64,000 nucleotides of DNA, taken from IMG/VR virus record IMGVR_UViG_3300034072_000758, positions 62,001 through 126,000 of that record. One strand, 5' to 3'. Of this stretch, positions 27,581-45,655 are shown piece after piece. Each line of letters opens with the position of its first letter. Positions within the stretch are counted from its first letter, which is position 1. The notes under the pieces are model-generated. The model did no database searches. It saw only the letters and a list, made by a program, of their open reading frames with translations, and had not been told where the DNA came from. Made by a program: the position numbers and the translations under genes.

Positions 27581-28258
27581 GTCATTCGGTAACTCGTGAT
27601 GGAGTTGCTGGCATAGTGATCAGATGTATACTAGCCTCTAACATCAGGCTAAAACGGCGTCCGGGGAACATGACCCGGCCTATGAGACAGGTCAGTCGAA
27701 CGGAAATGAATAGTCAGGAACGCTCCCCCGCCTGATAAAAGTTAAACCGCATATCCTTTCAAGGGATATGAAACCGTCTAAAAGGAATCCTACAAAACCT
27801 TGAAAATTAGGAATGTAGGTGTCACCTTCCACATGTATAACGCATTGTGGGAGTGGCGCTGACGCCGCGAAAGCGGTAGTCTAACCGATGTCTGATTACA
27901 AATATCATTATGAGATATTCGGCCTGTTTGATCCGCGAGGAACCTACAGGAGTGTGGCGAATAAACTAAGGGATCGATGATCCTAGTCAATGTTCTATGC
28001 CCCGTATCTCCCCTTTAACCGGCCAAATTAGGGCGTGGCACAATGTATGTAATTATGGGATGACCGTAGAGAGGGTAAGGAATACGCATCCGCCTTACCA
28101 TGTTCGGAAACATCAATCCGAACTTCGCGGCTCGTTATCAATGTGGAAATATTGCTTCATCCCCCGTGAGATAATTTTTTACTACGCCCATAGTGTAATG
28201 GGGTAAAAATATTTGTCTCGCGGGGGGAGATAAAGCTTCTATGGTAATACGGAATGAA
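27581..28258 (+). ncRNA. Candidate large structured ncRNA (~680 nt), family unassigned
   Basis: No convincing ORF. CTAAATA late motif at 27571-27577. 5' TCATTCGGTA (27582-27591) pairs with 3' TACGGAATGA (28248-28257) at 9 of 10 positions. Many internal hairpins. Confidence 0.6.
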
Positions 28259-28263
28259 TTATG

Positions 28264-28905
28264 TCATTCGTCATTATCGTGTTCATATAGAATAATGTCT
28301 TTTAGTATTGTGTTTTTCATATCAGCAAATACTTCGTCATCGCTTCCATATCCATCCCATATATCTGTTAATAATGAGTATAGTTCTCTGGCTATTGGGC
28401 TTTTTGGTGATCTCTGTAAAAAATACTTAAGTCCATTCATAGACCACAATATATTCCTTTCTGGTATTTCTACGGCATAAACAATAATTATACTTTTCAA
28501 GTCCTCTAATAGTGTTGAGCCATCATGAATGAAGTCATTTACGTCATGTACCATGTAGTGTAATTGACCTCTAATAAAATTATGAACATTATCTATGTCT
28601 GTTGTGAAACCTTGAAGACCAGTCATATCAAATCGAGAATGTTCTTTTAAATGCTTATATAATTCCGATACCGTCTGATAATTATTTTTATCTTCATCGG
28701 TGATCTCGTGAAATATCCCACGATAGTAGATACTATGGCCTTTTGTCTCTTCATATCCATGATCTCTAATTACTCTGGCTACATCATTCATATCGCCTTC
28801 GTAATTATTATCCCTTATATAATGAACCAAAATTTCTAGGGCCTCATCCAAAGACATACCAGTATGTTCTTTTAAAAGAACCTTATATTTTTTAAACCAA
28901 TCCAT
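28264..28905 (-). CDS. Putative ADP-ribosyltransferase-fold protein (R-S-E type)
   Basis: IYYRGI...QGFTTDID...YAVEIP...SDDEVF spacing resembles the ART R/STS/ExE motifs. TATAAATA at 28911-28918 (-). Confidence 0.5.
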   Translation of the reverse strand: MDWFKKYKVLLKEHTGMSLDEALEILVHYIRDNNYEGDMNDVARVIRDHGYEETKGHSIYYRGIFHEITDEDKNNYQTVSELYKHLKEHSRFDMTGLQGFTTDIDNVHNFIRGQLHYMVHDVNDFIHDGSTLLEDLKSIIIVYAVEIPERNILWSMNGLKYFLQRSPKSPIARELYSLLTDIWDGYGSDDEVFADMKNTILKDIILYEHDNDE

Positions 28906-28986
28906 AATTTTATTTATAAAAAGCCTCGGTGAAAGTGGGGGACTATCATGCTAATATTCTAGTGATCAGATCACATAAATATGGGT

Positions 28987-29565
28987 ATGCGTTATTTTGA
29001 GTTATTCGAATCCGAACTCCCTATGGATCAAGAGTCTCGTATGGCTAGAGCCAAGCAGATGGGATTCAACACGAGAGCTTATCATGGAACTAATTCTGAC
29101 ATAGACGAGTTCTCTCTTGATAAAACCAAAACCAATATCATGACAGGTCATGGTTTCCATTTCGCGGATAACTCTAAAGAAGCAAGTGGATATGCCAAGC
29201 AGCTTAAAGGCGCAGGGCGCAATGTTCTTCCTGTCTTACTGAGAATCAGAAAAGCATTTGTCGTAGGTATAGACGCACAGAATTACGATAATTATAAATG
29301 GATAAACAATACCTATGAGGAATTGGGTAAATCTGCTAATTTATCGGGAAGCATCTGGGATCAGAACAATCAGAAGATCATTTGGAAAATGGTTTACGAT
29401 AAGCTAGAGGGGATGGGGTACGATTGCATTTATTGGGAGAAAACCCCCGCCGATTTTATGAAGGGGCATTATAATAAGATCGTTATGTTCAACCCAAAAA
29501 ATATTCGTTCGATTTTTGCTAAGTTCGACCCATCTAAGAGTAATTCCGCGAATATCAATGATTAA
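28987..29565 (+). CDS. ART-PolyVal-like ADP-ribosyltransferase domain protein
   Basis: MDQESRMARAKQMGF, AYHGT, GHGFHFADNSKEASGY, NVLPVLL, IVMFNPKNIRSIFAKFDP. ATAAATA at 28975-28981, so the start is moved to the second ATG. Confidence 0.75.
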   Translation: MRYFELFESELPMDQESRMARAKQMGFNTRAYHGTNSDIDEFSLDKTKTNIMTGHGFHFADNSKEASGYAKQLKGAGRNVLPVLLRIRKAFVVGIDAQNYDNYKWINNTYEELGKSANLSGSIWDQNNQKIIWKMVYDKLEGMGYDCIYWEKTPADFMKGHYNKIVMFNPKNIRSIFAKFDPSKSNSANIND

Positions 29566-29596
29566 AAAAAGCCCCGGTTTTCCGGGGCTTTTTGTT
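29564..29596. terminator. Bidirectional intrinsic terminator
   Basis: AAAAAAAGCCCCGG-TTTT-CCGGGGCTTTTT. Confidence 0.85.
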
Positions 29597-30044
29597 AGGC
29601 GACCTTGGTATTGAGGGCGACTATATAGGCTTCGAGAGCCTTAACATCATCGGGCTTGAGCTTTTTGGGTTCATGGAACCCGGTGATCATGTATTCGGTA
29701 TTGTAGGTCGTTTCGGGGATCACTCCACCATTTTCCACGACTTCGACCGTAAAGTCTGCGAAGGACTTGCGTTCCATCATTCCTTCGAGGTCCGATTGAT
29801 AGGTGTCGAAGTACAGATTTACCAGATCGAGACCACCGAAGATACTGCCGCGCGCGAACTTCTGCTTTGTGGTCAGGCCGATCTTGTAGCCTTCCTGAGC
29901 CTTGTATCGGCGTTCATCGATCACACACTCGACGGAGAAATCGATCTTTGCGCCATGACAGAAGAATTGGATAGGAACCATGAAGCGAAGATTCTTGGTT
30001 CCGTGTTCCTTAGCCAGAGCGGCGAGTTTGATGCGATCAGTCAT
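29595..30044 (-). CDS. Hypothetical protein
   Basis: GGAGA RBS; promoter TTGACA-N16-TAGGAT at 30104-30077. Confidence 0.65.
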   Translation of the reverse strand: MTDRIKLAALAKEHGTKNLRFMVPIQFFCHGAKIDFSVECVIDERRYKAQEGYKIGLTTKQKFARGSIFGGLDLVNLYFDTYQSDLEGMMERKSFADFTVEVVENGGVIPETTYNTEYMITGFHEPKKLKPDDVKALEAYIVALNTKVA

Positions 30045-30168
30045 ATTGTATCTCCGTTTAAATTAAAATGTAGATCATCCTACCACATACTTGGTTCCTG
30101 TCAAGTATATTAAAATTGAAATGTGGTTAATAAAATGATAGACTGCCTTCAATAGTGCGAGTTGTGTA

Positions 30169-30666
30169 ATGAAAGTTCTGGTTTTAGACATCGAAGGGGA
30201 TGGGCTGTATCCGTCCGAAATCCATATGCTAGGCGTATTGGATTATGTCACCGATGAATTTACCAACTATAATGGTGACGCAATAGCAGATGGTCTTTGT
30301 GAAATAGATGAATGCGATATTCTGCTGGTTTACAATAAAGACTACGACATTAAGCACATAAAACGTCTGACTGAAAATGTTGTCTCGTTCAAAGAAGTTG
30401 TCATTATTGACGTTCTTGAACTCAGCCGCAAATATGTAAAATTTTTACCTAATAACAAGTTAAAGACTTGGGGTGATTATTTTGATTTTCCTAAAGGTGA
30501 TCATAATGACTGGTCAAAATACTCTCCCGAAATGGGAGTATATTGCGAGCGTGATTGTAGATTAACCAAAAAAGTATTTGACTTCATTTGCGAAATGCTG
30601 CTACCGTCCAAAGACATTTTGTTAGAGGCAATTGAAGATGCTCAGAGAAAACGCCAAATTCTATGA
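30169..30666 (+). CDS. Stand-alone DEDDy 3'-5' exonuclease (PolA/T7 gp5 proofreading-domain-like)
   Basis: LVLDIEGDGL, VYNKDYDI, IIDVLELSR, LKTWG, YCERDCRLT. Confidence 0.75.
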   Translation: MKVLVLDIEGDGLYPSEIHMLGVLDYVTDEFTNYNGDAIADGLCEIDECDILLVYNKDYDIKHIKRLTENVVSFKEVVIIDVLELSRKYVKFLPNNKLKTWGDYFDFPKGDHNDWSKYSPEMGVYCERDCRLTKKVFDFICEMLLPSKDILLEAIEDAQRKRQIL

Positions 30667-31723
30667 TTACGATGATGTGTTGATTCTTCCAAAGAAATCA
30701 AGTTTCACGTCACGTAAAGATGCTGTCGTTACCCGAAAGTTTAAAACAAAACATTCGGGTGTTACTTTCTCCGGTGTCCCAATCATCGCCGCAAATATGG
30801 ACACGACTGGCACTCTTGGGATTGCCGCCGCGCTCCAAAAAGAAAAAATGTTCACGGCACTCCACAAATATTACACCGCAGACGAAATTATCAATGCTGC
30901 TACCAAGGGTGTATCTTGGAGTTTCGATGAAGGTTATCATGGCGACAAGCTCAACAAAGACTACATTTTCTTATCCATCGGCTTTTCCGAGGACGAGTTC
31001 GATAAGATCGAAAAGGTTCAACAAACCTTGGGTTATCATCCGCACATTTGCGTCGATGTTGCCAATGGTTATACCGAAGCATATATCGAGTTCCTGACCA
31101 AGGTTCGTGAGAAGTTTTATAACTCGGTCATTATGGCTGGGAACGTTGCTACCCCCGATATTATCCCAGATTATGATGCGGCTGGGGTTGACATTATTAA
31201 GATCGGCATCGGGCCGGGAAACTTCTGTCGCACCCGCACGACTGCTGGGGTCGGTGTACCTCAATTGACAGCGGTTATGGAAACCGCCGCCAAAGCCGAT
31301 CTTCATGGGATCATGATCTGTGCTGATGGTGGGGTAAACGAATATTGCGACTTTGCTAAAGCACTGATTGGTGGTGCTGATATGGTCATGGCTGGAAGCA
31401 TGTTCGCCGCGCATGATGAGTCTGGTGGTGATGTGATTGAAGAAAATGGCGTCCGCAAAGTGCTGACATACGGAATGTCATCCGAACACGCCATGAAGAA
31501 GTACGCCGGGGAAGTGAATGCTTATCGCGCGTCCGAGGGTCGTACTGTCGCGGTTCCCCACAAAGGCCCTGTAGCCAACACAGTGCGGAACATCTTGGGT
31601 AGCTTGAGAAGCACTATGACTTACACCAACAGCCACAAAATAACTGATCTTCCACAAGCCGAAATGATCGTTGTTAATCGCACGATCAATAAGGCGCATG
31701 TCCAGAACACGGTTGGAATCTAA
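30632..31723 (+). CDS. guaC: GMP reductase (probable start ATG 30640)
   Basis: YDDVLILPK, PIIAANMDT, ICVDVANGY, MAGNVAT, KIGIGPG..C.TR, CADGG, YGMSS, YRASEGRTV. Confidence 0.92.
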   Translation: MKMLRENAKFYDYDDVLILPKKSSFTSRKDAVVTRKFKTKHSGVTFSGVPIIAANMDTTGTLGIAAALQKEKMFTALHKYYTADEIINAATKGVSWSFDEGYHGDKLNKDYIFLSIGFSEDEFDKIEKVQQTLGYHPHICVDVANGYTEAYIEFLTKVREKFYNSVIMAGNVATPDIIPDYDAAGVDIIKIGIGPGNFCRTRTTAGVGVPQLTAVMETAAKADLHGIMICADGGVNEYCDFAKALIGGADMVMAGSMFAAHDESGGDVIEENGVRKVLTYGMSSEHAMKKYAGEVNAYRASEGRTVAVPHKGPVANTVRNILGSLRSTMTYTNSHKITDLPQAEMIVVNRTINKAHVQNTVGI

Positions 31724-31989
31724 TGAAATCCAAATTCATTTCGGTTTGTAAGAACGTCATCGGAACAAACAATAAGACGATCCGAGAAGGTCTGGATCGC
31801 CCAATTATCCCGCCCATTCGTATTCAAAATGGAAAGTCGGGTGATAAGGTGACCTGTAACACCGCTGTATTGCGTGATTCTCATGGTGAGATCATTGGGA
31901 AGATACACTATCAGCCGGACAAAGCGATCATCAATTCTGGGGCCAAAGTCGTCATCGAATATTTCGGTGATATTGAGGTAGTAGATTAA
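31723..31989 (+). CDS. Hypothetical phage protein
   Basis: 88-aa ORF coupled to guaC (TAATG overlap). Confidence 0.6.
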   Translation: MKSKFISVCKNVIGTNNKTIREGLDRPIIPPIRIQNGKSGDKVTCNTAVLRDSHGEIIGKIHYQPDKAIINSGAKVVIEYFGDIEVVD

Positions 31990-32528
31990 GCTTCTGGGTT
32001 TTCTTTAGCGGCTTTTCTCGCAGCCATTTCGGCTCGCACCTCGATTTTTGATCTCATACCCAATCTCTTTCGAATCACTTCTTCATCTTGAAGCTGAATA
32101 TATGGTTGTGGATCATAACCCCATTCTTCGAGAGAATCGCCGTCCGTGTATATGTCTCTAGCAAAAACTTGCTTAGATATAATGCGGAAATTGTTATTCA
32201 AATGTGCTTCGCCATGCTCTTTGGCGTATGCTTTTGAAATAGTCACCCAATCGCCTTTATTAATAGGCGCTTTTATATCTTTGGGAATGGCGCGATAAAT
32301 TCTGATCATCTTATTCGGACGGCCTTTACAATCCATTACTAAAGAAAAAGCCCCAGCCGCGTCCTGACCATAATAGCGGTATCCGTTTGAACTATAAACA
32401 TCCGCTGGATACGTGCCGTTAGCCGTCAAATCATATAACGGTGAACCACTTATTTTGTCAGCGGCTCCATGCTCTCCACGATAATCTTCTTGGGAATTTT
32501 CGAGAATTATATTGATAATGTCACGCAT
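31986..32528 (-). CDS. Putative ADP-ribosyltransferase-fold protein (polyvalent-protein type domain)
   Basis: IRIYRAIP...INKGDWVTISKAYAKEHG...DGDSLEEWGY. ATAAATA at 32534-32540 (-). N-terminus MRDIINIILE. Confidence 0.6.
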   Translation of the reverse strand: MRDIINIILENSQEDYRGEHGAADKISGSPLYDLTANGTYPADVYSSNGYRYYGQDAAGAFSLVMDCKGRPNKMIRIYRAIPKDIKAPINKGDWVTISKAYAKEHGEAHLNNNFRIISKQVFARDIYTDGDSLEEWGYDPQPYIQLQDEEVIRKRLGMRSKIEVRAEMAARKAAKENPEA

Positions 32529-32589
32529 GATTATATTTATTGCGATTGACCATTATATCTGATAACGTTCTCCGAAATGGAGACACTTT

Positions 32590-32838
32590 ATGATCGAATT
32601 TCTCGATAAGTCTGGTGAATGGCAGGAGCTTTATGGTCACGGTTGTAAGACCGTTGATGACGCTCATCAGTATGTCAGTCTGTTGGGAAGAGACGGTCGT
32701 ATGCGTGTTAAGGGCGAGCAAGCCCCGTTCCCGCTCGTAGAGGCCGTAGTGCCACCGCTGTTGTCTACGGAGGCAACCCCTGAACAAAAAGCGCTCGCGC
32801 AACAATTCCTTAAAGATGTGTTGAAGGACATGAAATGA
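32590..32838 (+). CDS. Hypothetical protein
   Basis: GGAGA RBS; overlaps the next gene by 4 nt. Confidence 0.6.
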   Translation: MIEFLDKSGEWQELYGHGCKTVDDAHQYVSLLGRDGRMRVKGEQAPFPLVEAVVPPLLSTEATPEQKALAQQFLKDVLKDMK

Positions 32839-33104
32839 CTGTCGCGCATATCTACGAATATGACTCGTCTAAAACCAACCTGTCTATTAAGGTCGGTGAT
32901 CTGGAACGATTTCATTTTCACGTACTGCCCCGCGCGAATGAGGTCATTTATCTCAGGGATGATATGCGGTACTTGGTACTGGAAGTTATTCACACCGGCA
33001 TCAATGATTATCAAGAGGGTGTAACCCCACCCGACGCCTCAGTTGTTCTACTGATTTGCCGTAAGGTGGGGAGTTCTCCGCATTACGTATCGATTGGGTT
33101 TTAA
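32835..33104 (+). CDS. Hypothetical protein
   Basis: ATGA overlap with the previous gene. Confidence 0.55.
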   Translation: MTVAHIYEYDSSKTNLSIKVGDLERFHFHVLPRANEVIYLRDDMRYLVLEVIHTGINDYQEGVTPPDASVVLLICRKVGSSPHYVSIGF

Positions 33105-36022
33105 CCTAATCTGCGCTTGAGGTCTTCGACTTCTGCCTTAAGATCAAGCACGATGTCTTTCAACTCCTTGATCGCTTCGATAGTCAAACCGTTCATCTGG
33201 CCATAGTTGACGGCCTTTAGACCCGAAGGTGTGGTGATAACCAATTCTGGCGCTACAAGTTCAACATCTTGAGCTATTACGCCCAACTGACGTGGTTCAT
33301 TCGGAAGATCGATTCTGGTGTAAGTATAACCAGTGATCGCCGACACTTTATCCAAAGCATTTGAGATACGTTCCAGATCAGACTTGATCCGCATATCCGA
33401 CGCTTCGGTCAAAGTTCCTTTGATCCATACGTTACCGGTATCTGCTTCGATTTTAGTTACGTAGGAAGTTGAATTACCAACATAAACAGCAACGTTAGTT
33501 CTGGTATATTCATCCTGAAAACGATTAGCCATGTTTCCAGACCAACCCGGATTCAAATATAAATCCGATGCCGGTTCAATGGCAACCATGTCGGATACGC
33601 TAGTCATATCTTCGAGAAGCATGGAAACGCTATTTTGATAATAGCGAGCGTCATTGGTGGAACCGATACGCAGACATGACCATTCGTGTTGTGAAGATAA
33701 CACGGAATTTGCTTGAGCCGCTACTACGGAATAATTTGCCAAAATAGCTTGGAATGATGGAGCGTGAAGGGGCGCATAGTGGAAATTGTTGGTGTCATAG
33801 GTAATGAAACCCGCGTCACCAAAACCGTTCGCTTGGTTCGCTGGAAGCTGTTCAAAGATCAAGCTATGATTGGCGTCGATACGCATATCCGAGTTCGGAA
33901 GATTGAACGAACCACCATGAAGGTTGAAGTCACCATAGAAGTGAGCATCGCCCTGAACGCCGATATTACCCTTGGTGTCGATGTCGCCGGTCGCAGCATG
34001 GATTGTTACCACGTTTTCGATGGCATTACCTATGATGACGCGAGCATTTGCTTTAGCCGCAATTCTGGTTACCGGGTTTACTTGCTCCTGTCCGCCCCCA
34101 GAATGCCCCGGATTGAGATAGAGGCTCGCCGCTGGTTCCAAAGCCATCGAGTCGTTATTAACGCCATTTTCCGGGTCATTGGTAACGAAGATACGCAACA
34201 AACCAAATTCGATGTTTCCGAGGTTAGACGCGGCCCAAGACGTGTAGCTGTTTGCCATATGTGCTGCGTTTGCCGAAACTCTCTTACGAGCTTGAGACGG
34301 CGTGAGAGCACCGTTCGCACTCATTTCTTCGGTAATCGCATTATTAACGGCAGCATACAGAGTCGCATTCAGGAACGCATAGTCGAGATTTGTGCTTTCA
34401 AATACGATCCCGGCTCCATCATACCCACCGACTTGATTTGGAATGCCTTGGAATAGCAAGAAGTGATCAGCGTCAACAATCACGTTCGAATCTGGGAAGC
34501 GAACGATAGTGTTGGACATGTCGAAGAACCCATCCACCGTAGTTAGAATACGTGTATTAGCAAGAGAACCAAGTGTATCCAGATCGAGGAATGCTCCCTT
34601 ACCGGAAGTATTTGAAATGAACGCTATGCTGTTACCAACAGTTTGAATGCGCCAATCCCAATCCTCATTAGAAGCGTTCTTGAAATCAATAAATGGTCCT
34701 TCTACCGGATCATCGCTATAGAGATCGATACCACCAGCATTGAGGTATGTTGTTTTTCCAACACCATTGATAACCAGCCCCCCGGTCATCGTATCGCCCG
34801 CGCGCAGAATATACGCGGAACCATCCATACCAGCAAATGTTACCGACTCGAAATCACCGAGAACATCATTATAGGCATTGAACACAACGGCGTTTGGTAT
34901 AGTAGTATCCAACCAAATAGACCCGTTAGACAAGCGGATGCCATTTGATGAATCCTCAACCGGCTCGGATGGAGATATGAATGTTCTTGTATAAGTGTTA
35001 TCGATGTAATTGATGCGTAAATCTTGGCTATCAACACGTCCGGTCAACAATGAAACATTGCTCTCAGTCGCCCCAAGTCGATTATTAATCGCTATCAACG
35101 TGGCGTTCATGTAATTATCAACATTTTGGCGAGTATTTGCTTCGGCAGCAATAGCATTTGCCAGAAGCGAATAGTTCGTAACGGTCGAATTGATCTGAGC
35201 TTGAAGAATAGCATCATTCGCAATTCTTTGTGAACGCTCAGTTACCAAATCACTTGAAATGTTATTTACTGTATCGCCTAAAATGTTTACTGAGTTCTGG
35301 ACGTTCGTGATATTGATGTTCAACGCCGCATCACCGAGGACACGCGCATTAGTCTCTGCAATCAATTCGTTTGATAGGTTATTAATCGCATTCTGATAAT
35401 CAGGCCCACCGGTCGCATTAGACACCGCGTTTGACAGATCATTGATTTGAAGTTGAAGATTATTATCCCCTGAAATACGAGCTTGAACCTCAGTGTCTAA
35501 ATCAGTATCAAGTTGATTTACTGTGTTTGTAAGCGAGTTGATTTGAGTTTGAACGTTAGAGTTTACTGTGCTCAAACGAGAGTTCAGATATTCAAGATTG
35601 ACAACATCAGTATTCGCTACTGGAAGTGTAGCAACTGTAAGTTTGTTGCTTACATACAAATCCGTGAGATTAACAGAACCGTTAGCGTTATAAGATACAA
35701 CGCCTCTCCAACCAGTATTGTAATATTCAAGATTGCTGGTGGCGGAGTTGTAACGAATTAATCCAGCCCCGGTCGCAGTCGTGTTGACAGGCAGCTTGAA
35801 GCTGTTGTTTATGAACGATGTGGTAAGTTGAATCTGACCAGTAGACAGCACAGCGCTCTGGATAGACAATATAGAACTGTTACCCGTGGCAGCGACTTGT
35901 AAATTCTCAATAGCAGTCTTAATAATCGAGAAGTTGTCTCTGAATTTTTGAGACGACTGCTTGATATTAGCTACCGGATAATTCTTGTCGTAAGAGAGGC
36001 TTGAACCTGTATCAATACTCAT
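33101..36022 (-). CDS. Tail fibre protein with C-terminal intramolecular chaperone (peptidase S74)
   Basis: Coiled-coil N-half; C-terminal SDMRIKSD...ALDKV..ITGYTY...GVIAQDVE.VAPELV...VNYG...IEAIKEL. ATAAATA at 36047-36053 (-). Confidence 0.85.
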   Translation of the reverse strand: MSIDTGSSLSYDKNYPVANIKQSSQKFRDNFSIIKTAIENLQVAATGNSSILSIQSAVLSTGQIQLTTSFINNSFKLPVNTTATGAGLIRYNSATSNLEYYNTGWRGVVSYNANGSVNLTDLYVSNKLTVATLPVANTDVVNLEYLNSRLSTVNSNVQTQINSLTNTVNQLDTDLDTEVQARISGDNNLQLQINDLSNAVSNATGGPDYQNAINNLSNELIAETNARVLGDAALNINITNVQNSVNILGDTVNNISSDLVTERSQRIANDAILQAQINSTVTNYSLLANAIAAEANTRQNVDNYMNATLIAINNRLGATESNVSLLTGRVDSQDLRINYIDNTYTRTFISPSEPVEDSSNGIRLSNGSIWLDTTIPNAVVFNAYNDVLGDFESVTFAGMDGSAYILRAGDTMTGGLVINGVGKTTYLNAGGIDLYSDDPVEGPFIDFKNASNEDWDWRIQTVGNSIAFISNTSGKGAFLDLDTLGSLANTRILTTVDGFFDMSNTIVRFPDSNVIVDADHFLLFQGIPNQVGGYDGAGIVFESTNLDYAFLNATLYAAVNNAITEEMSANGALTPSQARKRVSANAAHMANSYTSWAASNLGNIEFGLLRIFVTNDPENGVNNDSMALEPAASLYLNPGHSGGGQEQVNPVTRIAAKANARVIIGNAIENVVTIHAATGDIDTKGNIGVQGDAHFYGDFNLHGGSFNLPNSDMRIDANHSLIFEQLPANQANGFGDAGFITYDTNNFHYAPLHAPSFQAILANYSVVAAQANSVLSSQHEWSCLRIGSTNDARYYQNSVSMLLEDMTSVSDMVAIEPASDLYLNPGWSGNMANRFQDEYTRTNVAVYVGNSTSYVTKIEADTGNVWIKGTLTEASDMRIKSDLERISNALDKVSAITGYTYTRIDLPNEPRQLGVIAQDVELVAPELVITTPSGLKAVNYGQMNGLTIEAIKELKDIVLDLKAEVEDLKRRLG

Positions 36023-36041
36023 GTGTGTCCCTTTTATCGTA

Positions 36042-37985: not shown

Positions 37986-38013
37986 AGGAATATTTAGGCA
38001 GATAAATAACTCT

Positions 38014-38700
38014 ATGAAATTCCGTGAAATCATATCAGAAGTAGACCGTGGCGGCGAAGTCGATGATGGGATGCTGTATGACTATAAAGAAAAAGAAGCA
38101 CCTAATAAGCAATTAGATTTGTTTCCAGACATTCCGTCTCTGGAACCAGATAACATGCCTAAAAATTTTCAAATAATTGGGCGCATAGGCGAATATACAA
38201 TAGTTGAAGATCATAATGAACATAAAGCCAACCCTCATTGGGAAAGACAGCATTACAATACAGTAAAAATAACTAAACAACATGCGTATGTATTATATTT
38301 TAAAACAGAGGTTGTTGGATATGTAGTCGGATATGACTGCTTTTTCCATGACAGTGCTATAGCACATAGATATGCTCATAATGGTTTTCAAATCAGCACT
38401 GTAAATATTCATGAAGATCATCGCGGAAAGAAACTAACTCTTCAACTATACCTTTGGCTCTTGAATAAAAAATATGATTATATATTACCGGATGAAACCC
38501 ATACTCACGATGGTGTGAAGCTCTGGGCTAAACTCAATAGCTCTCCGGTATTTGATTGTGTTATTTGGAATACAGAAAAATATGACTACAGTAAGAAAAA
38601 AGGTAAATTTTTCAATCAAGTATACGAAAAATATGGCTTAATTCCAGTTCTCACATTGAACGGAAAATCCCACAAATTGTTCTCGGAAGATGGGGAATAA
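38014..38700 (+). CDS. GNAT-fold acetyltransferase-like late protein
   Basis: FQISTVNIHEDHRGKKLTLQLY (acetyl-CoA motif A-like) and PDETHTHDGVKLWAKL. ATAAATA at 38002-38008. N-terminus MKFREIISE. Confidence 0.6.
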   Translation: MKFREIISEVDRGGEVDDGMLYDYKEKEAPNKQLDLFPDIPSLEPDNMPKNFQIIGRIGEYTIVEDHNEHKANPHWERQHYNTVKITKQHAYVLYFKTEVVGYVVGYDCFFHDSAIAHRYAHNGFQISTVNIHEDHRGKKLTLQLYLWLLNKKYDYILPDETHTHDGVKLWAKLNSSPVFDCVIWNTEKYDYSKKKGKFFNQVYEKYGLIPVLTLNGKSHKLFSEDGE

Positions 38701-38708
38701 ATAATAGC

Positions 38709-39956
38709 ATGGGATACGTTGTATATTTAACTGATGGAAATCCGCTTAGTAATGATCTGGTTCTGGATGTTTCGGAAGCTGGGGATGGTAGTGTAGTAGA
38801 TAATTCTAAGGCACCATTTGCTTTGCTGCGCAGAGGTGCGCGCAATTATGCTGACGATATGTCAACGGCATTGGTTCGTATCACTGAAAATTTTAGAAAT
38901 TCAACGCCCCCGGCACATCCTCTCGAAGGACAGCTTTGGTTTAATACAGGAAGCGGGGGTGAATTAAGACTTTACCAGCCCGGTTACCAACCCGATCCTT
39001 GGCGTCAGGTCGCATTTGCTGATCAACTAGGCCAAGGTCTTCCACCAGCCGCAACGGTGACCCTGACTGGCCACGTCACCGGATCGGGTAATTTTAACAA
39101 TGGTAGCTTGACGCTTAATACCACACTTCAAACAGTTTTGGCGGGTGCTAATCCCAACCAAACATTTACCAACCCAACTATTTCGGTTGATGAGTATGGG
39201 CGTGTCCGTTCTATTGTAGCCGGTGGGGGAACGAGCGCACAAACTATCATTAATGCTTTGGGCTATACACCATTGAGAAATGATTCGGACAACATGTCTG
39301 GATCGCTGGGTGTAGCTGGGAACCTGAATGTTGGTGGAAAGGTCATGGAGGGTGGTTACGCCCTATTGCCAGCCGGTGCGATCATTATGTGGTCTGGCGC
39401 TACAAATAATATCCCCGGTGGTTGGGCGCTTTGTAATGGTCAACCCGGAACACCAAACCTAACAGATAAATTCATCATGGGGGCTGGAAGTGTACCGACA
39501 CATACTGTGGGCGGAAATAGCTTCCTATCAACTACGGGCTTCGGTGGAACTATAACCGTTTCTGCTGCTGGTGCTCACAGCCACAACATTTCGATGGGTT
39601 CGGCTGGTGGACATAGCCACGGTGGTAGCACGGGTTATCATTCGCTCTCGATAAACGAAATTCCTCCACACCAACATGCCACCGCGTTTGGTGAAAGTCC
39701 GGGTCGCGGTTATGCTGGTCGATATGGTAACACTGGAACAACTAATAATGCGGGATCGAATGGGGGTATTGACTACGACAACTACGATTTTCTCACCAGT
39801 TCCGTTGGTCTTGGATATGGTCACGCACATTCAATCAACTTAGACGGTGATCACACACACTCATTATCATTGAGTGACGCGGGTTCGCATTCTCACGATT
39901 TCTCTTTTGACAATCGCCCAGCCTTTTACGCTCTCGCCTTTATCATAAAGCTATAA
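38709..39956 (+). CDS. Short tail fibre/baseplate protein with tail collar domain
   Basis: ENFRNSTPPAHPLEGQLWF N-terminus; LPAGAIIMWSG...PGGWALCNG...TPNLTDKFIMGAG collar; H-x-H repeats; RPAFYALAFIIKL end. Confidence 0.8.
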   Translation: MGYVVYLTDGNPLSNDLVLDVSEAGDGSVVDNSKAPFALLRRGARNYADDMSTALVRITENFRNSTPPAHPLEGQLWFNTGSGGELRLYQPGYQPDPWRQVAFADQLGQGLPPAATVTLTGHVTGSGNFNNGSLTLNTTLQTVLAGANPNQTFTNPTISVDEYGRVRSIVAGGGTSAQTIINALGYTPLRNDSDNMSGSLGVAGNLNVGGKVMEGGYALLPAGAIIMWSGATNNIPGGWALCNGQPGTPNLTDKFIMGAGSVPTHTVGGNSFLSTTGFGGTITVSAAGAHSHNISMGSAGGHSHGGSTGYHSLSINEIPPHQHATAFGESPGRGYAGRYGNTGTTNNAGSNGGIDYDNYDFLTSSVGLGYGHAHSINLDGDHTHSLSLSDAGSHSHDFSFDNRPAFYALAFIIKL

Positions 39957-40017
39957 GTTTCAAATTGACAACGCATACATAAACAAGGTAAAACAATAAA
40001 ATAAGAAGAGAATCGGT

Positions 40018-40404
40018 ATGCGTGAAGCTGTTTGTGCGTTAATTTACTGTAATACAACTGGTCGTTTACTTTCAGTAAAAAGAAAAGATAGCGGTAAATT
40101 CTCCTTCCCCGGTGGAAAAATCGATCCCGGTGAGGGTTATAAAGAAGCACTATCCCGCGAAGTTTTAGAAGAAACTGGTCGGGTTATTGTGGTAGAGAAC
40201 AATATTGGTCAATATACTGGTATTGATGATAGTGGTTATTCTGTAACCGCATTCCTATTCATTGTTAATGCCGAAAACGAACCCACTCACCCGTTTGAAG
40301 AAAACTTGTATCCGGCATGGATTTCGATGGAAGAATTTAAAAAAGGCATGGCTTTCATCGACTACAATTCCGAAGTATTTAAACTTCTGGAAGGTAGCTT
40401 GTGA
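40018..40404 (+). CDS. NUDIX hydrolase
   Basis: Nudix box FPGGKIDPGEGYKEALSREVLEETG. Confidence 0.9.
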   Translation: MREAVCALIYCNTTGRLLSVKRKDSGKFSFPGGKIDPGEGYKEALSREVLEETGRVIVVENNIGQYTGIDDSGYSVTAFLFIVNAENEPTHPFEENLYPAWISMEEFKKGMAFIDYNSEVFKLLEGSL

Positions 40405-40610
40405 TGAATGATTTTTTGCGATCTTTTTTATTTTTAGGCTTCATCGGCCCGTTGTTGATTTATGGGCTAATCAAAGATTTAACCAAATGGCAATTTTTAA
40501 TTGATAACCAATTGAATGTTCTTCGTTGGTGGTTCTTTGTGTGGATCACCGCACTTATTAGTGCTATTGTATACAAATGGATTAAATCGCTGGGTGGTAA
40601 GAAAGACTAA
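40401..40610 (+). CDS. Small two-TM membrane protein
   Basis: Two hydrophobic segments, GTGA overlap with the NUDIX gene, basic C-terminus. Confidence 0.55.
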   Translation: MMNDFLRSFLFLGFIGPLLIYGLIKDLTKWQFLIDNQLNVLRWWFFVWITALISAIVYKWIKSLGGKKD

Positions 40611-40635
40611 TCCAATAAAGTGTGTTTTAATACAG

Positions 40636-40643
40636 TATAAATA
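40636..40643 (+). promoter_or_regulatory. T4 late promoter consensus TATAAATA
   Basis: Exact match 5 nt before the gp25-like ATG. Confidence 0.75.
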
Positions 40644-40648
40644 TATGT

Positions 40649-41014
40649 ATGAGCGCCACCTTTATTGGTATGAACAGTTCAAACTACTTGTCTAAGAACT
40701 GGACAGCCTACGACATTGAATTAATCAAGATTGATTTACTCAACCACTTCAATACAAGAGTGGGTGAAAGAGTAATGCGCCCTGATTATGGAAACAAAAT
40801 CTGGGATTATTTGATGGAACCAAATATTGAAGGTAATCGTAAGCTCATATATAATGAAGCGTTGAGAATTTGCGAATCTGATAGTCGAGTAGAAGTACAA
40901 GATATACAACTATTCTATCAAGGTAATGGCATTCGTATTACTTGCCAGTTGCTATACAAACCATTCAATGTAGTAGATAGCTTTTATATCGATTTCACAA
41001 ATAGACAGATTTAA
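40649..41014 (+). CDS. Baseplate wedge subunit, gp25-like
   Basis: IKIDLLNHFNTRVGERVMRPDYG..IWDYLMEP...SDSRVEV. Confidence 0.85.
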   Translation: MSATFIGMNSSNYLSKNWTAYDIELIKIDLLNHFNTRVGERVMRPDYGNKIWDYLMEPNIEGNRKLIYNEALRICESDSRVEVQDIQLFYQGNGIRITCQLLYKPFNVVDSFYIDFTNRQI

Positions 41015-41022
41015 GGATAGAC

Positions 41023-44000
41023 ATGAGCCAAAGTATTAGACAATCTGAATTATTCGCAGGATCGGACTGGAAAGTTCTCTATCAAGCCTTCACGCAAGTC
41101 AATTTCAATGCGTCCGACCCCCCATCGATAGCCGCTGCGATGCGCGAATATCTGCGCACCTACTATCCTGAAAATTTCAACGACTGGATTGAATCGTCTG
41201 AGTTTATCGCCGTGCTCGAACTACTGGCTTGGCTCGGCGGCACACTGGCTTTTAAAACCGACCTTAATGCTCGTGAAAGCTTCTTGGAGACGGCTGAGAC
41301 CCGTCAATCTATCCTGCGTCTCGCTCGCTTCCTGTCGTACAACCCAACCCGTAATAACTGTGCGCAGGGTATATTAAAGCTCGTTGAAATCATGACTGAC
41401 GATGATGTCTACGATGCTTACGGTAATAACCTGATCAATACAAACATTCGCTGGGATGATGCGGACGATGTAGACTGGTTCGACAAGTTCACCTTGATCC
41501 TTAATAGCGCTTTTATATCTGCCAACAATTTCGGTGTACCGTTGAAGTCTGGAACCGTGGGTGATGTCAAGACACAGCTATATCGTTTCAATAACCTCAT
41601 GAGTGAACAGTCGCTTAACTTCACTACGTCCGTGGGTGGCTCATCCATGTTGTTCGATGTTGTGAACGTGGACTTCGATGACAATGGTGGGTTCTATGAA
41701 CGTGAACCATTACCGACTAATGCGCTCCACACAATCTATCGTAATGATGGAGCCGGAAATTCGTCAGCCGATACCGGCTTTTTCTTCATGTTCAAGCAGG
41801 GAACGCTTCAAAGCACTGTGGTGAACATTGCCACACCGCAGGAAAACCAAGTCATTGATATAGCCGCTCAGAACGTCAACGAAACAGATGTTTGGGTTCA
41901 GACGGTCACTGATGGCGGGGCCTTGTCATTCTCGTGGAGTAAAGTCCCAGCAATATTCAATCAAAACATCACTTACAACGATTATAGCCAAGACATCCGA
42001 AACATTTATTCGGTTATCACGAGAGACAATGATGCTATCAGTGTTCGTTTCTCGGATGGGCGTTTTGGTTCGGTTCCGGTTGGAAACATCCGCATATATT
42101 ATCGCGTATCAAATGGCCTTCAATACCAGATCAAGCCTACTGAAATTTCCCGCAAGAAGATTTCTGTCCCTTACTACAATCGACGCGGTGTACGAAAGAC
42201 CCTGACACTCACTCTGTCTCTTCAAAATTCGGTATCGAACTCCACTCCGAGAGAAACAGACGAACAAATTCAAGCCCGCGCCCCATCGGTTTACGCTACT
42301 CAAAATCGAATGGTTTCTGGTGAAGATTATAACGTCTTCCCGCTTCAAAGTAATTTGGCCGTCAAGCTCAAGGCCGTCAATCGCGTGTATTCGGGGCACT
42401 CCCGCTTTATTGACTTGAATGATCCTACCGGAACATATCAAGATGTAAACGTGTTCTCAGAAGACGGCTCGATATTTAAAGAAAAGTACAATCTACAAAC
42501 TGAAATTCCATTGTATTCTAATATTTCAGATGCCGAAATAGTTTCTAATTATATTCAACCATTGATCAATAAAGAAGAAGTATTGAGCTATCAACGTAGC
42601 CAACTTCTGAATCGTATGATTAACGTTTCGGGTGTTGCTTGGAAAAGATCAACAAATTCCAACTATTCTTCGACTGGATACTTTACGGCTTCAAATCAAT
42701 ATATTGCCGTAGGTGCTACTCTCCTATTCAATAATGGAGCGTGGGCGACAATTGTTTCGATTGATGGCGATCCGTATGCTGAAACGGTATCTGGTGAAAA
42801 AGGCACGGTAACTCTGTCGTATAACATCCCAGACAACGCAACCGTATCTAAAATCATTCCACCATTCCTACCATCGATCAGTACAGAATCGAGTGACGAA
42901 CTGGTTGCGGCTTTTGCGGCCAAGAACTCGTTCTCGCTCCATTATGATTACGCTGCTTTCAAGTGGACAACGACCGCTACCCAAACCACATTCAAGGTTT
43001 TGGATATTGTTTATTATGCCGGTTCTATGTGGTCGATCTCAGCCAACGGTGAACGTATGGTTTTCGAGTCCGAAAAGAATGTTCAATGGTACAATGACGG
43101 AAAGAAAGCATTCGATAGCGAAACTGGAAATTCCAAACGCGACATCATTAAGGTTTTGAAAACCAATGAAGACCTGAAAGGTGGTCAAGGACGCGGTTTC
43201 AGCACCGATCAAGTCTTTGACATAAATCGTTTGTATCTCAACCGTGACGGCACTGCTAATCCCCGCCGCGTCACCATTACGATGGCGGATGACAATTTGA
43301 ACGGATACCCGGATAACCCAGATGCTTTCAATAATGTTGCCAATATCGGGAACATTCCTTCGAACTATCTGTTCTGGGGTTATGACTCGACTTATGGCAC
43401 AGCTCCGCTGGCAAATTCGGTAATTCTGTTCCAGAACCAAGCTGATCGTGAAACTCTATCTAACGCGGTAGCCGATGGTTCGGTCACATTCCAGATCAAT
43501 GGTACGACCGCACAATACAACAACACCTTCTGGGTGAAAGATGGCTCGACTTGGAAACTTCAACGAGGTTTATACTCCTATGGTATCGGGCGTGGGACGA
43601 ATACAGCGGCTTCGTGGGTATCGACTGGAAGTTCGACATTCACAACAATCGCACCACAACAGGCGTTGTCCTTCCAGTGGAAACACTATGCGCCAACCTC
43701 CCACCGCATCGATCCATCCAAAACAAACATCATCGACATGTTTGTTCTTACGGCTCAATACGATTTCTTGATCAGACAATGGATCGCGGAAGGCGCTGAT
43801 GTGAATACACTCCCGACTCCAATTTCTGAACTTGATCTTCGTCTGACGTTCTCGGAATACGAAGATTATAAAATGTTCTCGGACTCTATCGTATGGAGAC
43901 CAGTCAAATACAAATTCCTTTTTGGTAATGGTGCTAACGAAGAATTGAAGGGTAAGTTCAAAGTTGTAAAGACACAGAGCACAACTCTATCCGATGGTGA

Positions 44001-44280
44001 AATCGCTTCTCGGTTGATAAAGGCCGTCAACAATTATTTCGATGTAACGGTTTGGGATTTCGGCGAAACATTCTATTTCACGGAGTTGTCGGCCTACATA
44101 CACCAACAACTCGCCAACATTGTTTCCTCCGTGGTATTCGTTCCAACTTCGGAAAGCTCAAATTTTGGTGATGGATATGAAGTGCGTTCAAGATCGGATG
44201 AAATTTTCATTTCCACCGCTCAAGTAGCAGATGTGATTATTATCAACTCGAATACGCCATCGGCTTTGAGAATTAGATAA
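41023..44280 (+). CDS. Baseplate wedge subunit, T4 gp6-like
   Basis: ENFNDWIESSEFIAVLELLAWLG...RESFLETAETRQSILRLARFLSYNP; TQNRMVSGEDY; WDFGETFYFTELSAYIH. Confidence 0.85.
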   Translation: MSQSIRQSELFAGSDWKVLYQAFTQVNFNASDPPSIAAAMREYLRTYYPENFNDWIESSEFIAVLELLAWLGGTLAFKTDLNARESFLETAETRQSILRLARFLSYNPTRNNCAQGILKLVEIMTDDDVYDAYGNNLINTNIRWDDADDVDWFDKFTLILNSAFISANNFGVPLKSGTVGDVKTQLYRFNNLMSEQSLNFTTSVGGSSMLFDVVNVDFDDNGGFYEREPLPTNALHTIYRNDGAGNSSADTGFFFMFKQGTLQSTVVNIATPQENQVIDIAAQNVNETDVWVQTVTDGGALSFSWSKVPAIFNQNITYNDYSQDIRNIYSVITRDNDAISVRFSDGRFGSVPVGNIRIYYRVSNGLQYQIKPTEISRKKISVPYYNRRGVRKTLTLTLSLQNSVSNSTPRETDEQIQARAPSVYATQNRMVSGEDYNVFPLQSNLAVKLKAVNRVYSGHSRFIDLNDPTGTYQDVNVFSEDGSIFKEKYNLQTEIPLYSNISDAEIVSNYIQPLINKEEVLSYQRSQLLNRMINVSGVAWKRSTNSNYSSTGYFTASNQYIAVGATLLFNNGAWATIVSIDGDPYAETVSGEKGTVTLSYNIPDNATVSKIIPPFLPSISTESSDELVAAFAAKNSFSLHYDYAAFKWTTTATQTTFKVLDIVYYAGSMWSISANGERMVFESEKNVQWYNDGKKAFDSETGNSKRDIIKVLKTNEDLKGGQGRGFSTDQVFDINRLYLNRDGTANPRRVTITMADDNLNGYPDNPDAFNNVANIGNIPSNYLFWGYDSTYGTAPLANSVILFQNQADRETLSNAVADGSVTFQINGTTAQYNNTFWVKDGSTWKLQRGLYSYGIGRGTNTAASWVSTGSSTFTTIAPQQALSFQWKHYAPTSHRIDPSKTNIIDMFVLTAQYDFLIRQWIAEGADVNTLPTPISELDLRLTFSEYEDYKMFSDSIVWRPVKYKFLFGNGANEELKGKFKVVKTQSTTLSDGEIASRLIKAVNNYFDVTVWDFGETFYFTELSAYIHQQLANIVSSVVFVPTSESSNFGDGYEVRSRSDEIFISTAQVADVIIINSNTPSALRIR

Positions 44281-45629
44281 TGGCGACATATACGGTCTTT
44301 CACGGAACGGATGGTTTGTTCCGTGATTTTTCGAATAAGAGTTTGGGGTCCGCCAACGGCACGGCCCCAATCAACATGGTTGGGTTCAATTTTACGGACT
44401 CGATTGATGTTGCTCGCACGTTCGGAAAGCGTATCATTCAAGCTCAAGTGACGATAGATAGACCTTTGGTAATCAACGCTAAGAGCGCATCGTATAGTGA
44501 TTTCAAGCATGTATTGAACGCCAAATTAAGTCGTGTCAGTAAAACAAAGTACGATGGCGTGATAATAAAAAATTATCTTGATGCTGGTAAATATGGTGAT
44601 GATTATATTAAAAGTAATCATTACATTCCATTTGATCTTTCTCAAATAAAAGTAACCGATAGTCTTCTTGAAGGTCTTATTAAGACGCCAACGGTCGAAG
44701 TAGACGACATCATGAAATACACAATGAAAGTTCTTTTAGGATTCTTTTATTGCGCTTTTCTTTATGAAACTGATGTCGAACAAGAAAAAAGAAACCAATT
44801 CTTATCAACTATTTTGCGCTATGGTAGCAAGTATAGTATCTACGAGGATGAATTAAAGCACATCACTAAAGATATTTCGGCTGAGGATTATATTCATCGT
44901 CGGGTAAATCGTATGCTCCAATCCAGATCATACAAAATGAAGACCGATAAAGGTGATGTTACTTATTTTGCTAAGATTACTGCTGGTGGGTTACAACCAC
45001 ACTATAATGTTATGGATCAACAAATATTAATTGATGTTATGTGGGCGCTGGAACAGCAAACCGATCCAGACTATGTATGGCGTGATAAAGACGTTCGGTT
45101 TTGCTATTTCCGCTCGCAAGAGATAAATGAACTCATTGTCATATTGAAATCGACAATACGTCATGAAATGATGCATTGTGTTCAGCACTTGACATTCGGT
45201 AGTAAAGACAGTCGCCAAGTTTCTATGGGGAATGGCTATAGCGACAAAGAAGATAAATCTGGATACTATACAAGTAATGTTGAGTTTTATCCTCAAATCG
45301 AAACATCTTTAGCCAAGTTTGAGACATATGTTTCTGATGCTTTGCTTTATCAACTATCCTTAAACGATCCCAAGACCCTACGTGACATGATTGAGTTCTT
45401 CGTGTCTGATAAGGATGGAGAAATGGTGAAGTCATTCAATACGAGTATGGGTAAAATAAACATTACGCGAAATGCGTTCTTCAATCATCAGAAACGCGCT
45501 TTCCTTTCACAAAAGGATACGAAGAAGCGCAATCTGGCTCAGTTTACATATCAACGCGCCATTCGTGAATTTTACAAAGAGATCATGGCTAAAATTCAAA
45601 AGGTAAAATCACGAAACGCTTTACAATAA
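44280..45629 (+). CDS. ART-PolyVal-like domain fused to a zincin-like metallopeptidase domain
   Basis: N-terminal VFHGT...VGFNFTDSIDVARTF...YDGVIIKN...IPFDLSQIK; C-terminal IRHEMMHCVQH (HExxH) with downstream VEFYPQ. Coupled to the baseplate gene by a TAATG overlap. Confidence 0.7.
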   Translation: MATYTVFHGTDGLFRDFSNKSLGSANGTAPINMVGFNFTDSIDVARTFGKRIIQAQVTIDRPLVINAKSASYSDFKHVLNAKLSRVSKTKYDGVIIKNYLDAGKYGDDYIKSNHYIPFDLSQIKVTDSLLEGLIKTPTVEVDDIMKYTMKVLLGFFYCAFLYETDVEQEKRNQFLSTILRYGSKYSIYEDELKHITKDISAEDYIHRRVNRMLQSRSYKMKTDKGDVTYFAKITAGGLQPHYNVMDQQILIDVMWALEQQTDPDYVWRDKDVRFCYFRSQEINELIVILKSTIRHEMMHCVQHLTFGSKDSRQVSMGNGYSDKEDKSGYYTSNVEFYPQIETSLAKFETYVSDALLYQLSLNDPKTLRDMIEFFVSDKDGEMVKSFNTSMGKINITRNAFFNHQKRAFLSQKDTKKRNLAQFTYQRAIREFYKEIMAKIQKVKSRNALQ

Positions 45630-45655
45630 ACCGGTCATTTGTGTAAGCTTATGGA

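Follow-up and report, generated by a model that had tools for sequence, protein, structure and literature searches.

Published work has predicted that myoviruses and jumbo phages package ADP-ribosyltransferases (ARTs) in their virions (PMC5512222, PMC9503650); for jumbo phages this is already an established idea, and the general concept is not new. The T4 record annotates the presence of the ART Alt in the capsid and its entry with the DNA. The internal proteins of T4, as well as fusions, are loaded into the prohead by a capsid-targeting sequence (CTS), MKTYQEFIAE, which is then cut off (PMC8442874; PMC3012670). For the ART-PolyVal family of polyvalent proteins, in which 2–15 domains form one polypeptide, injection with the DNA has been predicted (PMC5512222), and Bacillus phage G encodes at least ten ARTs that are predicted to be packaged (PMC9503650). 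Head-packaged enzymes act ahead of phage gene expression and in this way shape the first minutes of infection and its outcome against host defences; beyond Alt and the internal proteins of T4, they are hard to spot by sequence. Here we analyse a stretch of 64,000 nucleotides (hereafter the window), bases 62001–126000 of the 516,805-bp virus record IMGVR_UViG_3300034072_000758, which contains four genes for ART-like proteins, P0001–P0004 (Table 1).

The four proteins fall into three families, not one. The account that we favour, and to which we give a little better than an even chance, is that the genes are late, that their products represent three ART-fold families and that P0001–P0003 are guided by an N-terminal leader into the head and injected. 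Head packaging and injection of these three proteins are probable; the support is indirect and comes from a leader resembling the T4 CTS, a gp21-type protease and late promoters of the gp55 type. Judged from sequence, the new elements are the stand-alone small ART genes of three families and a single T4-like leader distributed over unrelated folds at an unusual scale. The predicted leaderless late expression and the predicted ART assignment of two unannotated families are new as well.

Like P0001–P0003, T4 Alt is an ART of a T4-superfamily myovirus, has the late promoter TATAAATA and possesses an N-terminus (MELITELFDE) of the same type as the leaders described below. However, Alt is a 682-aa member of the Alt/VIP2 R-S-E clade, whereas P0001–P0003 have 180–213 aa and belong to other families; the T4 alt gene has a Shine–Dalgarno leader, while the mRNAs of P0001–P0003 are predicted to be leaderless. 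The likeness to the T4 internal proteins consists in a short tag at the N-terminus, with [L/I]-x-E as its end, on unrelated small proteins, a gp21-type protease and late expression. In contrast to them, the cargo predicted here from sequence is enzymatic (ARTs, a GNAT acetyltransferase, Acb1) and far more numerous (about 25–30 candidates), and it bears two leader classes (MRYxEILxE and MSNWYRNLINLLE). P0002 and P0004 share with the polyvalent proteins (PMC5512222) the PF18760 domain, the His of strand 1 and, as the putative strand-5 residue, an Asp in a YDG-type motif, but the domain stands alone (P0002) or in a two-module protein (P0004) and not in a giant of 2–15 domains, the strand-2 Tyr is replaced, and delivery would use a T4-type leader instead of fusion to MuF, portal or other virion proteins. 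As in Bacillus phage G (PMC9503650), about ten ART genes with Macro and Nudix genes, predicted to be packaged, occur in a large myovirus; the lineage (Atu_ph07/Phosso-like relatives of T4) and the mix of families are different, and an explicit candidate packaging tag is present here.

The record has direct terminal repeats and is rated complete. Its gp6-like baseplate wedge protein shares 41–43% identity with the counterparts in Sinorhizobium phage Phosso (469 kb) and in Agrobacterium phage Atu_ph07 (490 kb), the nearest cultured relatives in this comparison, and about 40% with those in Rak2-like jumbo phages. This similarity places the phage among the very large members of the T4 superfamily, as a megaphage of approximately 517 kb. 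A near-identity DNA search with window positions 28000–46000 revealed no match in the deposited phage records. The phage is known from metagenomes alone, and its DNA was detected in subsurface and soil metagenomes; the search of sequencing runs returned a single RNA run with the phage (share 0.06), which is stored as contigs from which transcript starts are not readable. Among the products of the genome are a late sigma factor of the gp55 type (phrog_12791, E 6e-76) and a prohead protease of the gp21 type (Peptidase_S77, 75 bits).

Late control of all four ART genes is supported by the promoter motif. The hexamer TAAATA is 8-fold enriched within 60 nt upstream of open reading frames (ORFs) (104 occurrences against 13.1 expected), and it is sharply phased: its start lies at −11 for 29 genes and at −10 for 9, with 0.24 expected per position. 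When alternative in-frame starts are allowed, [A/C/T]TAAATA is found at −11 of 46 of the 777 genes, with no Shine–Dalgarno sequence. The full octamer TATAAATA is not enriched genome-wide (34 found, 33.7 expected); the signal is positional and consists of the hexamer at −11. The motif carriers include the genes of the terminase large subunit, four virion-structural PHROG proteins, tail fibres, a tail-collar fibre and gp25. A preliminary description of the window had assigned P0001, P0002 and P0003 a late promoter each and had coupled P0004 to the baseplate operon, and both statements were confirmed. TAAATA starts exactly at −11 from the ATG of each of the first three genes, which in the case of P0002 supports the start at 28987 used in that description. 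The ATG of P0004 overlaps the stop codon of the gp6-like gene as TAATG, and the gp25–gp6–P0004 operon opens with TATAAATA at −11 of gp25. Between the back-to-back motifs of P0001 and P0002, an inverted repeat, GTGATC-A-GATCAC, can be noted, which could be an operator or a chance palindrome.

The T4 late element TATAAATA spans −13 to −6 from the transcription start. Given this spacing and the end of TAAATA 5 nt before the ATG, the transcript would start at or next to the A of the ATG, and the late mRNAs would be leaderless. By this analysis, a large class of late mRNAs in this megaphage would be of this type.

P0002 and P0004 match the ART-PolyVal profile PF18760 with 63.3 bits (E 5.6e-17) and 37.0 bits, respectively, the Pfam gathering cut-off being 31.2 bits; the Pfam ART clan includes PF18760 as well as the weaker co-match DUF3990 (PMC7955679). 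The residues that define the polyvalent ART family are a His, a Tyr and an Asp, located in strands 1, 2 and 5, respectively (PMC5512222). P0002 (in the 194-aa numbering) contains YHGT at 34–37, with H35, GFHF at 58–61, and D148 in YDC, while P0004 contains FHGT at 7–10, with H8, GFNF at 35–38, and D92. The strand-1 His of HGT is kept in both proteins and is nearly invariant across the paralogues of the genome, and in the alignment the Asp lies in a conserved Y/F-D-G/C/S motif ahead of the last two predicted strands. At the strand-2 position, as located by motif alignment and not by structure, the family Tyr is replaced by His in P0002 and by Asn in P0004; paralogues a, f and g have Tyr, paralogue b has Phe, and paralogue d lacks the motif altogether. 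By profile, P0002 and P0004 are members of the family, and their putative active site is non-canonical. The Asn form (GFNF) is kept in five relatives of P0004 at 56–60% identity, which share the ART module only and differ in their C-termini. The C-terminal two-thirds of P0004 match phrog_38692 and phrog_22033 (annotated as unknown or ‘virion structural protein’), contain HEMMH at 295–299 and show a weak structural resemblance to zinc metallopeptidases. Since Pfam gives nothing for this region even at E ≤ 10, the metallopeptidase reading is drawn from the HExxH motif and the weak structural leads.

P0001 contains the motifs YRG (61–63), FTTD (99–102) and DDE (189–191). No match to it was found in Pfam, PHROG or PDB sequences, and a word search returned only the protein itself; tblastn searches of phage records with P0001 and P0004 gave no match either. 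An exhaustive profile search revealed 29 relatives, and G50, Y51, E53, R62 and E191 are invariant in the family alignment. In the AlphaFold model built on this alignment (pLDDT 90.3), R62 is located in strand 59–67, FTT (99–101) lies in strand 97–101 followed by helix 104–117, and E191 opens strand 191–195. The layout of the model is the classical R-S-E arrangement, with Arg in strand 1, a Ser/Thr-rich strand 2 that precedes a helix, and Glu at the beginning of strand 5. The best VIA matches are EcPltA (Z 6.0), MbcT (5.4), the iota-like toxin component CPILE-a, pertussis toxin and Scabin (5.3 each); further structural neighbours include C2/VIP2 toxins, C3 and cholera toxin. Clusters of the Pertussis_S1/Scabin-like type and phage ADPrib_exo_Tox clusters are among the ESM Atlas neighbours (TM 0.46–0.56).

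P0003, with the motifs YRAIP (78–82), WVTIS (94–98) and EEWGY (134–138), matches phrog_2579 at E 1.9e-38 and has 91 homologues, all without a Pfam domain. The residues Y16, H20, R79, W94, Y101, H105 and E135 are invariant in this family. In the model (pLDDT 93.7), R79 lies in strand 74–82, WVT (94–96) is followed by helix 99–109, and E135 stands just ahead of strand 136–138. VIA returned 37 PDB representatives with Z ≥ 2, at least 29 of which are named ART-superfamily proteins, including KptA/Tpt1, TreX, TreTu, diphtheria toxin, Arr, Vis, pertussis toxin, RES toxins, PARPs, SidE and ParT. The best structural match is KptA/Tpt1 (9ld3, Z 5.2, root-mean-square deviation 2.8 Å over 72 residues), a weak and partial one; P0003 has no PF01885 match, and the genome carries its true Tpt1 at another locus. 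The P0003 domain occurs in about 180 deposited phage genomes, mostly of cluster E mycobacteriophages, and the records examined for these phages give it no ART label. In the siphoviruses of this cluster (Phaux, Porky; 33–37% identity by tblastn) the same domain is the C-terminus of a ParB-like protein of about 470 aa, whereas P0003 is a stand-alone protein of 180 aa with a leader. In a 547-kb relative (GCA_040384165.1), a P0003 homologue (49% identity) is located about 6 kb from a stand-alone ART-PolyVal gene, and the pairing of the two families thus recurs in a second megaphage. A 213-aa ORF near this homologue was tested as a possible homologue of P0001 and is not one.

The R-S-E residue pattern is present in the models of both P0001 and P0003; the first Glu/Gln of the ExE motif is conserved in neither. 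All Foldseek E-values exceed 0.01, and the VIA Z-scores reach at most 6.0 (P0001) and 5.2 (P0003), in lists dominated by ARTs. The ART call for these two proteins is made from the coherent match lists, the invariant residues on the right strands and the conservation, taken together. The preliminary description had proposed the predicted fold as a check, and both models retrieve ART-fold proteins almost exclusively. Its claim of four ART-like ORFs holds for P0002 and P0004 through PF18760 and for P0001 and P0003 through the models and invariant residues; the ORF list contains all four at the coordinates it gave, and every motif it quoted occurs in the translations. It had also taken the genes for polyvalent-type domains encoded as small separate genes. 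This part stands for P0002 and P0004. In contrast, P0001 and P0003 show no match to PF18760 even at E ≤ 10 and, as modelled, are not polyvalent-type but belong to two other, so far unannotated ART-fold families (R-S-E-like and R-x-E, respectively). P0001–P0003 are single-domain proteins and P0004 has two modules at most, so that none is a polyvalent protein in the sense of the 2–15 domains in one polypeptide.

A profile–profile comparison of the three families gave probabilities of at most 1.4%, although the best local alignments still paired equivalent strand-1 and strand-2 motifs. As the families are not linked by this comparison, the four ARTs would represent three independent acquisitions or very old divergences. 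The different targets suggested for them in the preliminary description are plausible because three families are involved. The injection of several ARTs, also suggested there, gains the indirect sequence support described above for P0001–P0003 and none for P0004.

Scanning the genome with PF18760 revealed seven ART-PolyVal genes, five above the cut-off; five of the seven lie outside the window. The P0001 and P0003 families have one copy each. With the canonical Tpt1/KptA RNA 2'-phosphotransferase (176 bits), the genome has ten ART-superfamily genes in all; a Macro-domain protein (35 bits) is encoded too and, with Tpt1/KptA, enlarges its set of NAD+/ADP-ribose proteins. No PF03496 (Alt/exotoxin-type) ART and no ADP-ribosylglycohydrolase were found in the genome scan, and PDB sequence searches with all four proteins returned nothing meaningful. 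In two ART-PolyVal proteins, including P0124, the module is fused to a C-terminal region with ParB-like motifs (GHEGRNR; DGWHR). A comparable arrangement in mycobacteriophages is the P0003 domain joined to ParB; for the two proteins here, Pfam calls ParB in neither.

Across many unrelated contigs, the proteins of the P0001 and P0003 families have similar N-termini (MRNFIDIVE, MRKFIDIVE, MKTFRQYIKE, MKSFREYIEE and the like), and the P0003 homologue of the T4-like Vibrio phage phi-ST2 starts with MKTYTEFLSE. A hidden Markov model (HMM) of the leader was constructed from the first 14 residues of 66 foreign members of these two families only, with the ART-PolyVal paralogues outside the training set, and all 777 ORFs of the genome were scanned with it. 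The top-ranking genes start with MRY[F/H/R/E]E[I/L][L/I]xE. P0003 (MRDIINIILEN) ranks 2nd, and ART-PolyVal paralogues rank 8th, 9th, 16th (P0002, MRYFELFESE), 20th and 24th; the presence of five of the seven paralogues within the top 24 has a hypergeometric p of 3.7e-7. An exact −11 late motif at the same start was found in 11 of the 30 top leaders, against 46 of 777 genes overall (p = 2e-7). A CTS-like leader is present in P0002 and P0003, weak in P0001 and missing in P0004.

The possibility that the leader is forced by the adjacent promoter was considered and rejected. The leaders vary in synonymous codons, the proteins behind them are mostly non-homologous, and the products of structural genes that share this late promoter begin with unrelated sequences. 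The synonymous variation and the absence of the leader from these structural genes argue for a protein-level signal instead of a promoter by-product.

About 25–30 late genes are candidates for leader-tagged products, and they also include five further ART-PolyVal paralogues, a GNAT acetyltransferase and a homologue of Acb1, a phosphodiesterase directed against the cyclic-oligonucleotide-based antiphage signalling system (CBASS). The GNAT gene has a weak match to Pfam Acetyltransf_1, an Atlas feature score of 0.96 and TM values of 0.57–0.69 to viral GNAT clusters; its product is predicted to belong to the same cargo class as the leader-tagged ARTs. The Acb1 homologue is an anti-defence nuclease that may be delivered by the virion. 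Both enzyme classes have been predicted to be virion-delivered by Iyer et al. (PMC9503650, PMC5512222). A second leader class (MSNWYRNLINLLE / MTHWYRNIINLIE) can be noted on five genes with the late motif, one of which is an ART-PolyVal paralogue; four of these genes lie close together at 255–263 kb. The P0001 start, MDWFKKYKVLLKE, is nearer to this second class than to the first. We tentatively propose, while estimating the chances as somewhat against the proposal in this full form, that the CTS-like leader and the phased, leaderless-type late promoter mark a cargo of approximately 25–30 proteins, comprising eight ART-fold enzymes of three families, the GNAT, Acb1 and many proteins of no assigned function, and that the P0001 and P0003 families are unrecognised ART clades.

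The favoured account can be described as follows. RNA polymerase with the gp55-like sigma factor would start at or next to the ATG, and P0001–P0003 would be made late, alongside head and tail proteins, probably from leaderless mRNAs. The amphipathic leader (M-R/K-x-aromatic-x-E-I/L-I/L-x-E) would act like the CTS of T4 internal proteins and direct them into the prohead scaffolding core, where the gp21-like protease would trim it after the [L/I]-x-E site. At the next infection, the mature enzymes would exit with the DNA and use NAD+ to modify host macromolecules. P0004 would be made late in translational coupling with the gp25–gp6 wedge genes, and its location may be baseplate-associated or cytoplasmic.

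Several observations weigh against this account. The leader of P0001 itself is weak (rank 140 of 777), and most of its relatives start with MRxFIxIVE; P0004 is without a leader and ranks 652nd. The T4 CTS and the Alt N-terminus score just 6.0 and 4.4 bits on the leader HMM. The cluster E relatives of P0003 are ParB-fused and siphoviral, so a T4-type CTS is not usable there, and the phi-ST2 homologue is flanked by regA and the DNA polymerase gene instead of late genes. The structural Z-scores of P0001 and P0003 are low, being under the level that VIA itself deems safe, and P0002 and P0004 have non-canonical residues instead of the strand-2 Tyr.

The ARTs might be expressed late and remain unpackaged, acting in the producing cell in the shut-off of the host or of abortive infection, in nucleic-acid modification or in Tpt1-like RNA repair, with the leader as a helix for stability, oligomerisation or leaderless translation. 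This is in line with T4 ModA and ModB, which are ARTs that are not injected (PMC5512222), with the RNA 2'-phosphotransferase as the best structural match of P0003, with the position of the leader at a predicted leaderless start, where it could affect translation, and with the replication-gene neighbourhood of the phi-ST2 homologue. We nevertheless consider it unlikely: the leader varies in synonymous codons, which indicates selection at the protein level, and is missing from late structural genes of the leaderless type, leaders of the same type occur on homologues in unrelated phages and are close to an experimentally proven packaging tag, and the canonical Tpt1 is already present in the genome. 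Still less probable, in our estimation, is that some of the proteins, chiefly P0002 and P0004, are catalytically dead ART folds that bind NAD+ or ADP-ribose, counter NAD+-based defence signalling as decoys or sponges, or function as structural adaptors. The change of the strand-2 Tyr in both proteins and the loss of the motif in paralogue d would suit such a role, as would the divergence of the seven paralogues, which suggests sub- or neofunctionalisation; however, both proteins retain the His of strand 1 and an Asp in the YDG-type motif, and the conservation of GFNF in the five P0004 relatives indicates that this form is under selection. Other active ART clades accept a residue other than Tyr at the strand-2 position (the H-H-h clade, e.g., KptA), which also counts against dead folds.

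For P0004, a separate explanation deserves more serious attention than either of these, though we still hold it to be rather unlikely: it could be a two-domain effector associated with the baseplate or tail, or a morphogenetic protease, that is made with the gp6-like wedge protein and not packaged in the head, any delivery being via the tail tip. The overlap of its start with the gp6-like stop, the lack of a leader, HEMMH with the weak similarity to zinc metallopeptidases, the ‘virion structural protein’ PHROG match of the C-terminus and the position itself, since the slot after gp6 in Atu_ph07 and Phosso holds a 4449–4555-aa virion structural protein, all fit this explanation. On the other hand, the genes downstream of P0004 are metabolic, not structural, the peptidase call has no support from a Pfam family, and P0004 shows no similarity to the giant post-gp6 protein, because of which its origin as a fragment of that protein was also rejected. 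Finally, the ARTs could be toxin-type modules for superinfection exclusion or selfish toxin–antitoxin elements, and not effectors of host entry. Their structural neighbours do include the toxins MbcT, ParT, RES and DarT of toxin–antitoxin systems, and small unannotated ORFs flank P0001 and P0003, but none of the four ARTs is paired with a recognisable antitoxin or immunity gene, and late-promoter control and a CTS-like leader are not features of such elements; we regard this as very improbable.

If leader-guided packaging is correct, the injected effector repertoire of T4-superfamily giant phages would be readable directly from sequence. As a working tag, the leader would allow the proteins injected by giant, mostly uncultured T4-related phages to be listed by a simple rule, and three ART families, a GNAT and an anti-CBASS nuclease would be entry-phase effectors. 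For two widespread unannotated families, those of P0001 and P0003, a biochemical assignment open to testing would become available. Should the leader not serve in packaging, what is left would be an ordinary, though large, jumbo-phage ART collection of the kind already documented.

Table 1. Features of the window and of the remaining genome discussed in the text; positions are those of the window unless the genome or another record is named.
Feature	Position	Strand	Description
P0001	28264–28905	−	213 aa; R-S-E-like ART-fold protein, rare unannotated family
P0002	28987–29565 (in-frame ATG also at 28981)	+	192 aa (194 from 28981); stand-alone ART-PolyVal, Tox-ART-HYD2 type
P0003	31986–32528	−	180 aa; ART-fold, R-x-E family annotated ‘ParB C-terminal domain’ (phrog_2579)
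P0004	44280–45629	+	449 aa; ART-PolyVal at residues 5–125 and C-terminal region with HExxH
P0001/P0002 divergent spacer	28906–28986		81 bp; back-to-back motifs TATAAATA (−, 28918→28911) for P0001 and CATAAATA (+, 28974–28981) for P0002
Inverted repeat	28945–28975		between the P0001 and P0002 motifs
P0003 late motif	32539→32534	−	TAAATA
Late motifs	28911–28918, 32534–32539	−	
Late motifs	28974–28981, 38003–38008, 38698–38703, 40636–40643	+	
gp25-like baseplate wedge gene	40649–41014 (motif 40636–40643)	+	PF04965 GPW_gp25, phrog_43; first in the operon ending with P0004
gp6-like baseplate wedge subunit	41023–44280	+	1085 aa; phrog_10646, 1094 bits
Viral GNAT acetyltransferase	38014–38700	+	candidate cargo; leader MKFREIISE, rank 1 of 777; exact −11 motif; between tail-fibre genes
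Acb1 anti-CBASS phosphodiesterase homologue	genome 10734–11306, outside the window	+	PF23474, 82 bits; leader MKFRELLEP; −11 motif
Second-class leader genes	genome 255156–255539, 258993–259802, 261857–262249, 262252–262878, 141152–141619		shared N-terminus
Canonical Tpt1/KptA	genome 195078–195593	−	RNA 2'-phosphotransferase
Macro-domain protein	genome 298338–298685	−	
ART-PolyVal fusion with ParB-like motifs	genome 219888–220826	−	the other such fusion is P0124
P0003 homologue and ART-PolyVal gene of the 547-kb relative	GCA_040384165.1, 3985–4512, 10001–10549		
Single large ORF	14305–25581	−	3758 aa
IMPDH/GMP-reductase family gene	30632–31723	+	223 bits
NUDIX hydrolase gene	40018–40404	+	PF00293, 60 bits
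Glutathionylspermidine synthase homologue	46916–48115	+	phrog_6215, E 9e-107

Other genes of the window can be noted as well. The single ORF of 3758 aa may correspond to the 4449–4555-aa virion protein that follows gp6 in Atu_ph07 and Phosso, in a relocated position. Two auxiliary metabolic genes, of the IMPDH/GMP-reductase family and of a glutathionylspermidine synthase homologue, are situated amid the late genes. The NUDIX hydrolase gene lies directly upstream of the gp25–gp6–P0004 operon; Nudix proteins are among the NAD+/ADP-ribose enzymes often reported as virion-packaged (PMC9503650).

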